A stretch of 63,961 bases of DNA, filler included, from Reticulomyxa filosa (lineage: Eukaryota > Protista > Foraminifera): assembly GCA_000512085.1 (NCBI GenBank). It is 17 parts of 17 records of this genome, joined end to end, with 100 filler letters (N's around TTAATTAATTAA, not from the genome) between each part and the next. Parts side by side here need not be neighbours in the genome. Positions count along the whole stretch, not along the records: positions 52,813 to 58,121 come from ASPP01021810.1; 16 more parts are not named here. The stretch is one strand, 5' to 3'. The position numbers and the translations under genes were made by a program. This document shows, one piece after another, positions 52,813 through 58,221 of the stretch; position 1 is the stretch's first letter, and every line of letters starts with the position of its first letter. The notes under the pieces are model-generated. The model had not been told where the DNA came from. It searched no databases and saw only the letters and a list, made by a program, of their open reading frames with translations.

Positions 52813-54821
52813 ACAGCAACAGCAACAGCAACAGCAACAGTGATAGTGGTAATAAGAATGAGAAATGGATCATTAAAGATTTGCTGTGTCAGCCAATGTT
52901 GGACGAAAACACAAGCACTAACAATAGCAACAGTAATAAGGATGATAGTAATGAAAAAGAGATGTATGCGTCATTGCAAATAATTCACAAAAGCTTTTTA
53001 TATTTGGGCGATTTGAGCCGATACGAGACAATGTATGTGAAGAAGGACGACAATTGGGAAGGGTCATATCGCAACTACGAGTTATCTCGACAGTTGATGC
53101 CATCACAAGGGAACCCACATAACCAAAAGGCGGTATTGGCGACATATGAAAAGGACACAATGTCGGCGATTTACGAGTACGTGTTGAGTGTGTCTGTCAG
53201 TCATCCGTTTCAAACGTCACAAGACAACTTGAAATTGCTTTTACAAAACCACTTGAAACGGTTCTTACAGCACGTGGACGCGGTTAAGTCTTTGCAAGTG
53301 GTTAAGCTCACTTGCATGACCAAGTCCAAGCATTGGCGCGATCTGGAATACTATGTCATCGTCATCTTCGCCGCCCTCTGCACCTACCACGAGGCCTATC
53401 TGTCCATCGTCACCGAGTTGCAAGACTTGGTCTTGGCCAAGCTGCGCAAGCTCTTGTTTCAATCCAAAGATCGCTCCGTCGACGCCGAGTCTGTATCTAC
53501 TGATTCCGCCGACTATTTTATGGGTGGAAGAGATGAGTTTGTCAAGCATATTGTTACCATTCAACAACAACATGAACAACAACAACAACATGAAGACCGG
53601 TCGGATACGCATACACATCAATGCGATTTTGCGTCGGATGAAAAAGTGCAAAAAAATGTGGTCGACTTGAGCATGGCGATCACCATTTGCAGTTTGCACT
53701 TTTTGCAACAATGCTTTCATTCGAACTCGAAGCAAGGGGTGTTGGAAGCCAACGCCTGGATGCTGTCGCTCGTATCGACGATGATGGAATGTGTGTCGAC
53801 CGATCACCTCACCTTGCTCCCCGCCATCAGCGTCGCCTGCCAATGGCTGCGCACACACTTTTGCTTTATCGTGCCCGACATGGCCATGTCCCCGTGGGCC
53901 GCCATTCATCTCAAGCCAACGCATCTGGCCTCGCACAATGAGTTCTTTTCTCAATTGGCAAACATGCTCAATGTATTGGCCGAGTGTCAGTTTCAAACCA
54001 AGATCGACCGTGACCGCTTTCAGCAATTGCAATCACAATCTCAATTGCAATCACAATCGCACACGAGAAAATTACTACCTGAAGAGCATGCTCTATTCGA
54101 CACACAGTATGTAATGTCCATGCATGGGAATGCTACGAATACTGTTGACCCTTTGGCTTTTTTCGAACATCGCAGAAAACAGTACGTATCCTCCTCCTCC
54201 TCCTCCTCTCTCATTACTACTCATCATTTCGATCCTTTATCTTCTTCTTCTTCTTCTTCTTCTTCGTTGTTGTTATCGTCGCAGGTAGATTTGACCGTGG
54301 ATGAAATGAACTACTGTCGGTATCAGAAGATCATGTCGCTGGTCGAATTGGCATGCGTCCAAAAACCAGGCATTTTGTTGTGTGAAAGTGGCGTTTGGTC
54401 CGCCAACCGCTTGTTGACCGTTGAAAACCAAGAGGAAATCAGCCAAACTACCAAATACTTGGCTGCGATGCATTCTTCATACAACACTACTACTACTACT
54501 GCTGCTATTACTAATAATAATAATAATAGTAATAATGTTACATGCTCCCCGCACTCCTATGCACTGGCTCCCCGTTCACAGTCTCCTCCCAATACTAGTG
54601 CTTGGCCTCTGCCCATGGGTGAGCGCTCGCATCATTCGTATGTATGCACTGGCATTCATTCGCACTCGTCGCACTCACCACACTCGCCTGACGTCGCGTA
54701 CAGACACAAGGCTTCGTCGCCGTTTTGGTCCAATTCTAGCATTCCTTCCCTCACACTCACCCCCAATCCCAAAGAAAACGCTCCCACTTTAGACTTTGAA
54801 CGGGTCGTCGGACGGACTTAA
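52813..54821 (+). CDS. EST1/SMG5-6-7 family protein (14-3-3-like TPR/EST1 domain), 5'-truncated, no PIN domain seen
   Basis: 'FLYLGDLSRY', 'PSQGNPHNQKAVLA', 'AIYEYVLSVSVSHPFQTSQDNL', and later 'LLPEE' and 'R...I' motifs. Confidence 0.85.
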
Positions 54822-55333
54822 AGACAATAAGAAATGAGAATGAGAGAGAGAGAAAGAGACTGGTGTTGTGCTTTTATTTTTTTATTTTTTTTTTTTGTTA
54901 TTTTGATGACTGATTCGGGGAAGTCATCTTCATTGTATGATGTGTTTACTTTTTGCTTTGTTTTTAATGTTTGTGTGCGTGTTGCGTGTTTGCTTGTGGT
55001 TGTGGTTTGTCTTTTTATTGTCTCACTTGAGAACGGTCGTAGGCGGGGCAAGGTTGTGATAGTCAAATTTTTTGCCCTTTGTTCTTTTTCTTCTCTTCCA
55101 CAGTTCATAGCATTCTTTTTTCTTTTTTATTTTATTCGCATTTTTATCTTTGCATTCATTAAAATAAAAAAAGGAAATGTTAAAAAAAAAAATCAACCAG
55201 TTCTATTTTTTGTGGTTCAAATTGAAGTTTCGTAAAAATAATACGGCTCTACCAATATTTAATCTCTAACATATTGTAGTCTCTTTTCCAAAAAATAAAA
55301 ACTTAATCAGTCAATAAGTGGTAGATAAACGAA

Positions 55334-56699
55334 ATGTGTATTGGGACTTTGCTGGCGTCCTGCTGTGCAACATGTTTTGTGAACTGTTGTTGCTCAGGAC
55401 TTAAAGAATGCAACGCGAAGCGTGGACCAGCGTCTCGCATTCCTTACATCTTTATAATGTTTGTGGCGTGTGTATTCAGTGTGGTGATGACATTGTACGG
55501 GGAGAAGCAACTGTATTCGAACTCGCTGCTGAATACGTCATTGAAGGTATGTAACAAAAGCAGTTGCGAAGGAAACGGGGTCGTATATCGTACCTCGTTT
55601 GCATTGGCATTATTTTTCATAATCCATGCCATTTTGGTTCGAGCGTTTATGGCATTCCATTGGATGTTTTTAATCATAAAACTGCTATGTTTGTCGTGCT
55701 TTTTGGTCGGATCGTTTTGGTTTCCAAACAACTTTTACCAAGGCTATGCCGAATTTGCGAGAGTGGCATCGGTAATATTTTTTAGTCCTCCAAGTGTTGG
55801 TGTTGGTGAACTGGGCATGGGACGTGAGTGACAACGTGTTGGCAAAGTTGGAAACATTGGAATCGGAGAAATCGGAAGAAAATGATAACAAATGTAAAAT
55901 CGGATGTTATCAGATGATGTTGGTTGTGGCCACGTTGTTTTTAATAGGCGCCATGATCACTCTCTGGGCATTGATGTTTGTCTGGTTTGGCAAGACAGGA
56001 TGCACGACCAGCAAAGTATTGATCTCTCTCACCATTATCGCCGCCGTGGCCTTGTTTATAATCTCCGTCTCCGTTCAACATGGCAGCATCTTCGTCACTG
56101 GCATCGTCACGTTATATGGCTCGTATCTGTGTTACAACGGCTTGCAGTCCAGACCGCAAGAGTCGTGCAATGCATTTGCCGGCGAAAAGAACACGCTCAA
56201 CTTATGGCTCGGCATCTTGATCACGGCTGCCGCTTTGTCGTATGCCGGCTTTTCGGTTGCCAGTTCCACCAACAAAGTCATCAAACAAAGCACGGATGAG
56301 TCTGGAGTCGATTTGAAGGTGAAAAAGGAGGTGAAGGATAAAGAGGATAAGGATGACACTGCAGATGCCGAGGATGTTGGCAAGTCCAATTATGACGACT
56401 TGGATGATGATGAAGATAAAAAACCTAAGAAAAGCTTGAGTGGAGAGGTCCTCAGCGAAGATGACCTCCATGAACGAAGACACAATGTCATCTTCCATAT
56501 TTGCATGGCCTTTGCTTCTATTTACATTTCCATGCTTTACACCAACTGGGCCACCGATACTGCCAGCTCCACTCGAACTAGTGGCAGAGGAGATATCAGC
56601 TTGGGAGTTAACATTGCCGCTGAGTGGCTGAGTTTCCTTTTATATTTCTGGACTTTGATCGCCCCCTCTGTTTGCTCAAACCGAAGTTTTGACCAATGA
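55334..56699 (+). CDS. SERINC/TDE (serine incorporator) membrane protein; one frameshift in the T6 run at 55778-55783
   Basis: Cys-rich N-terminus, 'CEGNGVVYRTSFALALFF', 'F(L)VLQVLVLVNWAW', 'FHICMAFASIYISMLYTNW', 'LYFWTLIAPSVCSNRSF'. Confidence 0.93.
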
Positions 56700-57739
56700 T
56701 GCCGAAACTTCCTTTCTATGCTTTTTTTTTTTCCGAAGGAATAATTTCTCTTGTTAATTTTCTCTTTAGTTTTGAGCTTTTTCTGTGAACATGATTGTCC
56801 AATCGGACCGAACAAAGACTTTTGTAAATCGATAATCTTTTTTTTTAAATTGCAAGTAATATATTGTTGTTGAAAGAAATCAATATTACGCCTCTACGAT
56901 ACAAGCACACTACACTCGGTACGTACAGTTTTCCAGTCAATTTCTTTGTACAAATTTTAAACTTTTTTCCCTTCCATGCGACATGGCATCGACAGAATGT
57001 CTACTTTACAAAAAACAATCTCCTTCATATACTTGAACACCAAGCGTTACGTAGGGTAAGGCGTTCACTTTTTTGGAAGGGCTTTCGCGTCATGAACCAG
57101 CTTTTCACGCCAGTGAGGTAGAAAACGTTGATTCTGTATTATACGACCACAGTATGTTTCCAACAGCGGCAATACCAAAAACAACAAACGACCACACTTT
57201 AGCAACTTGTTTTTATCACGTCGCGCAAGGCGTCAAATATTCATAACGTGTGCAAAAAATGGCATATATTGAAACTACTGTGTGTCACAACGTGAGGTGA
57301 AGCAACCAACAGCGGTTATTTGGACAATTGATCACTTGGGCATAAGTGTCTGAAATGAAAAGGACAAGGTCGGCGTGTGCTGTATGCGCTGCGAGCATAA
57401 TCAGTTCAGTCACAAAAAAAGTGACAAATCAATATGGACATCTTGAGCAAATGCTCGACGCGCTACTATCAAACCACCTACAATTCAAGCGCACAAATAA
57501 TCACAAAATGGACAACACTTACAGGCAAAGCTTCGCGCATGTAATGAACTGGAAAAAGGGGTGTTCAAAAACGAACATGCGACAAATTGATGTGATGACA
57601 AGAGACCAACAGCTGATCGATAGAATTTGTTTTTCTGGAATAGCAAAGATCAAATCAATGTTCGCATTATCATTATAATACTAAGTATGTTTGTAAAAAT
57701 ATATTTTTTCCTAAGAGTAGTCAATGATTGTTTTTTTTT

Positions 57740-58046
57740 TAACGGTGGCTGGAATCGAACCAACTTCTCCACTTAAAAAAAAAAAAAAATTGCACAAAAA
57801 CCCCACATTGAAGATATTGCTATCTTCAATATGAAATAAATGTGTGCCCACATCGAGGGTAAGTGTAAATAAACCCACTGCGACTTAAATTTAGTTACAC
57901 TTAACGCACCCCCTCGACATGGACCAACCTAGTAACTCTTTTGAAGTTACTCCACTCCCCCGAACTCCAGGCAACCCTGAAGCCCTGAGAGTGGATGGTC
58001 CTAATTTTTTTTTTTTCGGTGGACTTTACCATTAAGTTACACCGCT
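57740..58046 (-). ncRNA. tRNA-shelled structured RNA (tRNA with a large insert in the anticodon loop; possibly an interrupted tRNA-Lys(UUU))
   Basis: Acceptor stem AGCGGTG/CACCGTT plus A73. D-arm ACTT-AATGGTA-AAGT. T-arm GTTGG-TTCGATT-CCAGC. CCAC/GTGG stem continues into A12TT/AAT15 and a multibranch domain. Many G-U pairs work only on the minus strand. Confidence 0.75.
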
Positions 58047-58221
58047 TTTAGTACACTTTTTTAAATTTACTTTTGTGTTTTTTTTTTTTTTTGTGCAAAA
58101 GGTCAGACACGCAAACAAACGNNNNNNNNNNNNNNNNNNNNNNNNNNNNNNNNNNNNNNNNNNNNTTAATTAATTAANNNNNNNNNNNNNNNNNNNNNNN
58201 NNNNNNNNNNNNNNNNNNNNN

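Follow-up and report, generated by a model that had tools for sequence, protein, structure and literature searches.

A transfer RNA-shaped shell divided by a strongly folded RNA domain in Reticulomyxa filosa, a candidate RNA polymerase III gene for a structured non-coding RNA

Transfer RNA (tRNA) bodies serve both in engineered scaffolds and in the tRNA-microRNA units of murine gammaherpesvirus 68 (MHV68) for RNA polymerase III (Pol III) promotion, end processing and stability of a cargo RNA. In engineered scaffolds the cargo takes the place of the anticodon loop, and in the viral units hairpins are placed after a complete tRNA-like part. The split tRNAs of Nanoarchaeum are encoded by separate archaeal gene halves that carry GC-rich complements and form a proper bulge-helix-bulge (BHB). 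In the yeast SNR6 gene, which encodes U6, box B lies downstream of the terminator, boxes A and B are separated by ∼200 bp and a TATA box is present at −30 (PMC13475603), and among long structured tRNA introns the 113-nucleotide (nt) tric31905 of Drosophila comes closest as a precedent (PMC4536317). The element considered here comes from the foraminifer Reticulomyxa filosa (GCA_000512085.1) and was found in a stretch of 63,961 nt, filler letters included, in which 17 parts of that genome are joined end to end and which is referred to as the window; positions 52,813-58,121, all in window numbering, represent the 5.3-kb piece ASPP01021810.1. An initial annotation of the window had described, on the minus strand at 57740-58046, a tRNA shell of 307 nt in all that is interrupted by a folded RNA domain, and this observation is confirmed far beyond chance. 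The reading favoured for it, tentatively and at somewhat less than an even chance, is that a Pol III gene of tRNA origin encodes a structured non-coding RNA, with a product that ends in T runs and a 3′ half that acts as a downstream B box.

Nucleotide n of the RNA corresponds to position 58047-n on the minus strand. The acceptor stem is formed by AGCGGTG (nt 1-7; 58040-58046) and CACCGTT (nt 300-306; 57741-57747), which pair over 7 bp with a mean pair probability of 0.95; the single G·U is G2·U71, the next pair is C3-G70, there is no G3·U70, and the 3′ strand with its discriminator A (nt 307), together 57740-57747, continues into a run of 10 A. The 5′ acceptor strand is followed by U8-A9 and by the D arm (58023-58037), ACTT-AATGGTA-AAGT, which consists of a 4-bp stem and a 7-nt loop containing GG and is overlapped by an A-box-like motif (58029-58039). 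The anticodon region reads TCCAC-CG, A12, TTA, ∼211 nt of further sequence, AA, T15, AA and GTGGA. Within it, UCCACCG (nt 24-30; 58017-58023) has two possible partners, since UCCAC pairs with GUGGA, the 3′ strand of the anticodon stem (nt 275-279; 57768-57772; pair probability 0.96), or CACCG pairs with CGGUG of the 5′ acceptor strand in the fold of a truncated product. The T arm (nt 283-299; 57748-57764), GTTGG-TTCGATT-CCAGC, contains the B box GGTTCGATTCC at 57751-57761. Invariant tRNA positions present in the shell include U8, A14, G18G19, A21 and G53-C61, the T arm carrying G53-T54-T55-C56-R57-A58-C61. The shell retains all four of its helices, of 7, 4, 5 and 5 bp; in the minimum free energy (MFE) structure those of the acceptor, anticodon and T arms are all found, with pair probabilities of at least 0.95 for the shell stems. 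The 7-bp acceptor with G2-U71, the D and T arms and the A- and B-box motifs that the initial annotation had listed can all be read directly on the minus strand, and the shell is a genuine tRNA fold and tRNA-derived.

The shell nevertheless departs from functional tRNAs in having A10, no proper Levitt pair and either an irregular nt 26 or an irregular anticodon stem. An anticodon stem of 5 bp, UCCAC/GUGGA, can form from the CCAC and GTGG segments written out at first, but this stem takes over the U that closes the D stem, and under standard numbering, with nt 26 present and a 5-nt variable loop, it is reduced to three standard pairs plus 26:44, followed by C·A and G·A, which make up a CG/AA 2 × 2 loop. 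The acceptor, D and T arms have the features of a decoding tRNA, whereas a 5-bp anticodon stem with a 7-nt loop containing U33 and an anticodon is absent, the insert replacing the loop. ARAGORN makes no call at default settings or with introns of 0-400 nt allowed, and the Rfam tRNA model has no match at E ≤ 1. When the insert was deleted in silico, ARAGORN at its default threshold called a tRNA in 93 of 704 variants; the calls shown are Lys(ttt) or an undetermined all-T anticodon, which is meaningless because the T run supplies the loop, and the tRNA-Lys(UUU) assignment was likewise rejected as a T-run artefact. The element is therefore not a decoding tRNA.

In place of the anticodon loop is an insert of ∼245 nt, composed of A12, a 215-nt three-arm domain and T15. 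RNAfold gives the 307-nt unit an MFE of −126.5 kcal/mol (z = −10.8), a value equalled by none of 100 shuffled sequences, while the plus strand reaches only −84. Besides the acceptor, anticodon and T stems, the MFE structure has a 12-bp A12:U12 helix and a four-way junction from which three arms extend, so that the folded domain and junction proposed earlier are both recovered; helix probabilities are 0.75-0.99, apart from the slippery A:U helix at 0.38, in which the A12 run (nt 31-42; 58005-58016) is the partner of the U run. Arm 1 (nt 47-121; 57926-58000; probabilities 0.75-0.99) is Y-shaped, with an 8 + 10-bp hairpin closed by a GUUG loop and an 8-bp hairpin closed by a CAAAA loop. The MFE structure and pair probabilities also define arm 2 (nt 123-201; 57846-57924), a 14 + 9 + 8-bp hairpin with a 7-nt bulge, and arm 3 (nt 203-254; 57793-57844), a 4 + 17-bp hairpin capped by a GCAA tetraloop of the GNRA type. 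The three loops are as first described. At the border of arms 1 and 2 the GGACCA/UGGUCC helix that had been assigned to arm 1 survives as a competing alternative, the MFE structure preferring GACC/GGUU and GUCC/GGGC. In sum the cargo is made up of hairpins of 21-31 bp with almost no single-stranded sequence. When 200-nt windows were slid along the 5.3-kb piece, minus-strand z values of −5.3, −10.5 and −6.4 were obtained at the element and |z| stayed below 4 elsewhere, making it the only strongly structured segment of the piece.

The helices of the insert contain 66 Watson-Crick and 16 G·U pairs, with no A·C among the single mismatches (binomial p = 3e-5), and the plus-strand fold contains no G·U pairs. 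An A·C mismatch on one strand is a G·U on the other, and neutral decay of inverted repeats in DNA is expected to yield the two equally; the 16:0 ratio therefore indicates that the helices have been maintained as RNA, on the strand that also encodes the tRNA shell. It suggests selection for minus-strand RNA structure in the insert and bears out the initial suggestion that the G-U pairs are strand-specific. Several further features of the insert were considered and set aside: similarity of the cargo arms to each other is not significant in a shuffle test, an AGTGGAG match between shell and arm 1 is reached by 216 of 500 shuffles, and the 7-nt bulge lacks the tandem G·A pairs of a K-turn.

The arrangement of promoter elements and T runs provides the basis for the favoured reading. 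The A box (nt 8-18; 58029-58039) has one mismatch to TRGCNNANTGG and the B box (nt 286-296; 57751-57761) agrees with the consensus at 11 of 11 positions, the only such site in the piece. A perfect B box together with a near-consensus A box leads to the expectation of TFIIIC-dependent transcription by Pol III, which fits the earlier suggestion of a tRNA serving as promoter scaffold for a cargo RNA. Oligo(dT) runs terminate Pol III. Two such runs, both overlooked in the initial annotation, lie upstream of the T arm and B box: T5 inside arm 3 (nt 247-251; 57796-57800), which may act as a weak terminator, and T15, the partner of A12 (nt 258-272; 57775-57789), which would be expected to act as a strong one. 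No T run is found at the 3′ end of the unit, the first occurring ∼45 nt downstream. The leader contains an AT-rich, TATA-like stretch at −23 to −11 from the first shell nucleotide (58057-58069), which is not significant alone in AT-rich intergenic DNA, and, from a scan for runs, A15 on the sense strand (58078-58092). An 11-nt leader segment (58090-58100), followed in minus-strand sense by the A15, complements the base of arm 3 (57790-57800, which includes T5) without a mismatch; it is of low complexity and may be due to chance or be the remnant of an inverted repeat.

On this basis the tRNA remnants would constitute a split Pol III promoter. Transcription would begin just upstream of nt 1, proceed through the 5′ tRNA half and the cargo, and stop in T5 or T15 before the B box is reached, yielding a main product of ∼250-270 nt in which a 5′ hairpin, CGGUG/CACCG around the D arm, precedes a three-arm cargo that A12 and the 3′ U tail close by pairing with each other. 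The 3′ shell half would never be copied and, in the manner of yeast SNR6, would provide a downstream B box. When the truncated RNA, ending in the U run, is folded, A:U pairs close the cargo and the first 30 nt form a separate hairpin, in which C29 and G30, unpaired in the full-length model, pair with G4 and C3. The terminated product is ranked first because the truncated RNA folds well and uses C29/G30, a ranking drawn from promoter and terminator rules and not from observation. The claim of a 307-nt RNA carrying both halves is accordingly revised, in that the product more likely lacks the 3′ half unless another polymerase makes it. What stands of the overall interpretation is the tRNA-derived shell, the selected structure of the cargo and the absence of a known family; the less well supported part is the full-length RNA, which needs read-through of T5 and T15.

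Several points weigh against termination ahead of the B box or against a gene of any such kind. Beyond T15, GUGGA and the 3′ acceptor strand remain perfectly complementary to the 5′ half; such complementarity has no role if it is not transcribed and is in keeping with an RNA of full length or with a very recent origin. The T5 run inside arm 3 would also shorten a Pol III product, A12 and T15 resemble low-complexity runs that are common in intergenic DNA here, such that their pairing could be incidental, and the model would transfer established Pol III termination rules to this lineage. Runs of eight or more A or T number eight in the 5.3 kb, always between genes, and the element contains or adjoins four of them. 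In addition, the public sequencing runs provided no transcript evidence (a single run matched, with 5% of the sampled words), and the collections searched contain no homologue or second copy, so that no covariation could be obtained.

For the 5′ half, a 21-nt word from the D arm and anticodon stem has no match in the metagenome (241 million records) and viral collections. For the 3′ half, a 19-nt word from the T arm and acceptor stem occurs at 75 loci, 49 in metagenomes and 26 in bacterial or archaeal genomes. Most are ordinary tRNAs, those recognised by ARAGORN spanning many types (Met, Tyr, Cys, Asn, Trp and others), and the named genome records are all bacterial; the other loci have no tRNA call within ∼90 nt upstream of the match, and neither an insert nor the same 5′ half is present at any of the 75. 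In the viral collection, three words taken from the arms of the insert are without match, blastn in distant mode found no match to phages, and there is no second copy within the 5.3-kb piece. A spurious 43-residue open reading frame across arm 1 was compared with 1.84 billion protein representatives and matched two tandem-repeat proteins at 30-41% identity, which is taken as chance; these proteins, of 896 and 812 residues (P0016 and P0017), contain 15 and 7 near-identical tandem repeats and are probably translated satellite-like DNA. Metagenome contigs L008 (362-380), L019 (1466-1484), L030 (212-230) and L041 (353-371) contain tRNA clusters in the order Cys, gap, His, Asp, Lys, where the gap holds a normal T arm and 3′ acceptor strand that ARAGORN does not call, possibly an unusual tRNA unrelated to the element.

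Alternatively, the element could specify a full-length tRNA-scaffolded RNA, that is, a 307-nt transcript with both halves and the cargo at the position of the anticodon loop, which is judged unlikely; the acceptor/T minihelix of such an RNA would allow RNase P, RNase Z and the CCA-adding enzyme to process and stabilise it. Favouring this are the four intact shell helices, the whole-unit MFE, which has exactly this architecture with the shell stems at or above 0.95, the coaxial extension of the anticodon stem by A12/T15, and sense-strand selection on the cargo. Against these stand the position of T5 and T15 inside the transcript, since Pol III would not pass 15 T and the RNA would have to come from another polymerase or a host transcript, the distance of the first T run beyond the 3′ end, and the CG/AA 2 × 2 loop, with either nt 26 missing or the anticodon stem broken. 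A more specific version, less probable again, is a natural tRNA scaffold in which the full 307-nt RNA, made by a polymerase that ignores T runs or as part of a host transcript, has its ends processed and receives CCA as a tRNA does, by way of its acceptor/T minihelix, and borrows tRNA identity for the stability, export or organelle import of an RNA that is not a tRNA. The doubtful but more substantial rival is a dead tRNA gene or tRNA-like pseudogene, the anticodon region of which was replaced by unrelated structured sequence, for example from a mobile or duplicated element, leaving a unit without function. The single locus and lack of relatives, the absence of the D-arm/anticodon-stem word from the metagenome records, the irregularities of the shell (A10, the Levitt pair, and either nt 26 or the anticodon stem) and the low-complexity A/T runs flanking the insert are consistent with decay. 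CCACCG next to an A run is moreover found twice in the same sense, at 58017-58022 with 58005-58016 (CCACCG-A12) and at 57743-57748 with 57731-57740 (CCACCGTT-A10), which hints at a microhomology-mediated rearrangement, and a local alignment that only 2 of 500 shuffles reach matches the tip of arm 2 (nt 146-165) to shell nt 4-25. A ratio of 16:0 for G·U over A·C is, however, unexpected for neutrally decaying inverted repeats or miniature inverted-repeat transposable elements; the shell stems are all intact, no direct repeat representing a target-site duplication is found at the insert junctions, and insertion into an intact loop should have left loop remnants, of which there are none.

It is highly unlikely that the locus is a functional tRNA gene with a giant structured intron of ∼237-239 nt, cut by the tRNA splicing endonuclease and perhaps stable or circular like the tRNA intronic circular RNAs (tricRNAs) of metazoans. 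Long structured tRNA introns do exist, a relaxed BHB, and only that, can be drawn at the canonical 37/38 site by slipping the A12/U15 helix, and the long-intron ARAGORN search, silent at default thresholds with introns of up to 400 nt, yields tRNA-Lys(ttt) with a 237-nt intron once thresholds are lowered to 80%; at that setting, though, seven further calls appear in the 5.3 kb, and Lys(ttt) is a T-run artefact that needs a non-canonical intron position. Removal at 37/38, whether by the ruler rule or by the relaxed BHB, would leave the loop CGAAAAA, with G33 and the anticodon AAA. To our knowledge, no functional tRNA has such a loop, and an ordinary intron-bearing tRNA was rejected on the ground that 37/38 splicing leaves no functional anticodon loop. 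The central helix of the relaxed BHB would consist of C·U, G·U, A-U and A-U, where the MFE structure shows a 2 × 2 loop, and transcription by Pol III is incompatible with a precursor in which T15 (and T5) precede the T arm. An assembly or amplification artefact, such as a chimeric join in a fragmented protist assembly, is scarcely credible: the source assembly seems to be made of short contigs and homopolymer runs are error-prone, but the tRNA halves complement each other at the correct spacing, the insert consists of three separate hairpins with G·U pairs and not of a simple inverted duplication, and the flanking genes are coherent. Termination of a Pol III transcript in the T runs remains the reading placed first.

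The element lies between genes, the neighbouring reading frames being EST1/SMG6-like, Serinc and deaminase-like, and judged by these the 5.3-kb piece is eukaryotic nuclear DNA. It lies 61 nt past the stop of the deaminase-like frame, with which it is convergent. At 52881-54821 on the plus strand, a 646-residue open frame has EST1 and EST1 DNA/RNA-binding domains (Pfam E = 2.6e-20) and resembles an SMG6/EST1-like gene; it includes Asn/Ser/Gln-rich low-complexity stretches and is possibly truncated by the edge of the piece. A telomerase RNA, an idea raised by this neighbour, was rejected in view of the lack of any template-like repeat, and the proximity is taken as coincidence. A weak Rfam match to the archaeal C/D-box RNA sR52 at 54212-54259 on the minus strand (20.8 bits, where the gathering score is 50; E = 0.46) sits in a GAA-repeat coding stretch and is likewise attributed to chance. 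The Serinc (serine incorporator) gene at 55334-56699 (plus strand) is present as two overlapping frames, 55334-55831 and 55794-56699, which span profile positions 1-150 and 155-434, so that a short intron or frameshift is likely near 55794-55831. Its nearest relatives are only 62-66% identical and are located on contigs of 1-1.6 kb, from which no syntenic locus could be obtained. Frames at 57073-57678 on the plus strand, which are those convergent with the element, resemble a zinc-dependent deaminase: a weak MafB19-like deaminase match (E = 0.002) that carries a C-A-V-C motif lies at 57346-57678, and 57073-57246 contains an H-A-S-E motif.

Rfam 15 was searched with the whole piece at E ≤ 1 and with 57803-58046 at E ≤ 10, and neither search returned a group I or group II intron, RNase P/MRP RNA, signal recognition particle (SRP) RNA or small nuclear RNA (snRNA), in accordance with the lack of core motifs reported initially; nor was there a confident match to any other family. 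A group I intron, RNase P/MRP RNA, SRP RNA and snRNA were rejected for want of Rfam or ARAGORN support, and a box C/D or H/ACA small nucleolar RNA was rejected as no such boxes are seen by eye.

The locus is rated as belonging among tRNA-derived non-coding RNA genes. If expressed, it would represent an unusual build for such a gene, in which a highly structured cargo of 215 nt is flanked by tRNA halves that act as a split promoter for Pol III and perhaps also as a handle for processing, a layout that is absent from Rfam. The cargo is most likely, though this is speculative, a stable structural RNA or the precursor of small RNAs. Were the full-length version true, it would be the parallel in nature to the tRNA scaffolds engineered for expressing recombinant RNA and a eukaryotic nuclear analogue of the topology of transfer-messenger RNA (tmRNA). 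Even as a dead gene, the locus would still contain a clear RNA-selected structure embedded in a tRNA pseudogene.

Literature on tRNA introns in Foraminifera, tRNA genes of Reticulomyxa and unusually long tRNA introns offered nothing of this kind. Several known systems share parts of the arrangement. As noted initially, the topology recalls tmRNA, in which a tRNA-like domain (acceptor and T arm) is made from both ends around a large structured middle; a tmRNA was nevertheless rejected, as the element has a D stem, has G2·U71 and C3-G70 in place of G3·U70, lacks a tag frame and pseudoknots, lies in a eukaryotic nuclear context, and is found neither by the tmRNA mode of ARAGORN, even at 80%, nor by Rfam. 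With the split tRNAs of Nanoarchaeum it shares complementarity between the sequence after the 5′ half and that before the 3′ half, which joins the halves, although here both are in one eukaryotic locus and the complements are A12 and T15. tRNA-derived short interspersed elements (SINEs) and tRNA-targeting transposons such as Dada (PMC8869645) similarly bring tRNA-derived A/B-box sequence together with sequence unrelated to tRNA. SINE heads are, however, contiguous and followed by a body and tail, and transposon insertions leave target-site duplications, neither of which applies to the element.

Like tricRNA introns, the insert is highly paired and occupies the anticodon region of a gene shaped like a tRNA, and its hairpins have the size of small-RNA precursors (PMC4536317); it differs from them in being twice as long, in leaving no sensible loop after removal at 37/38, in its poor BHB and in the internal T5 and T15. 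In the element, unlike in the engineered and viral tRNA scaffolds, the cargo divides the shell and the 3′ half is preceded by a terminator; the engineered scaffolds are moreover artificial. Yeast SNR6 appears to offer the closest parallel for the arrangement of a 5′ A box, an oligo(dT) run and a downstream consensus B box, the boxes of the element being ∼270 bp apart and the upstream DNA AT-rich. The element has no U6 match in Rfam, its AT-rich stretch lies only at −23 to −11 and not as a TATA box at −30, and its A box, B box and flanks, unlike those of SNR6, still form a complete tRNA cloverleaf, so that the likeness to SNR6 would be one of layout only.

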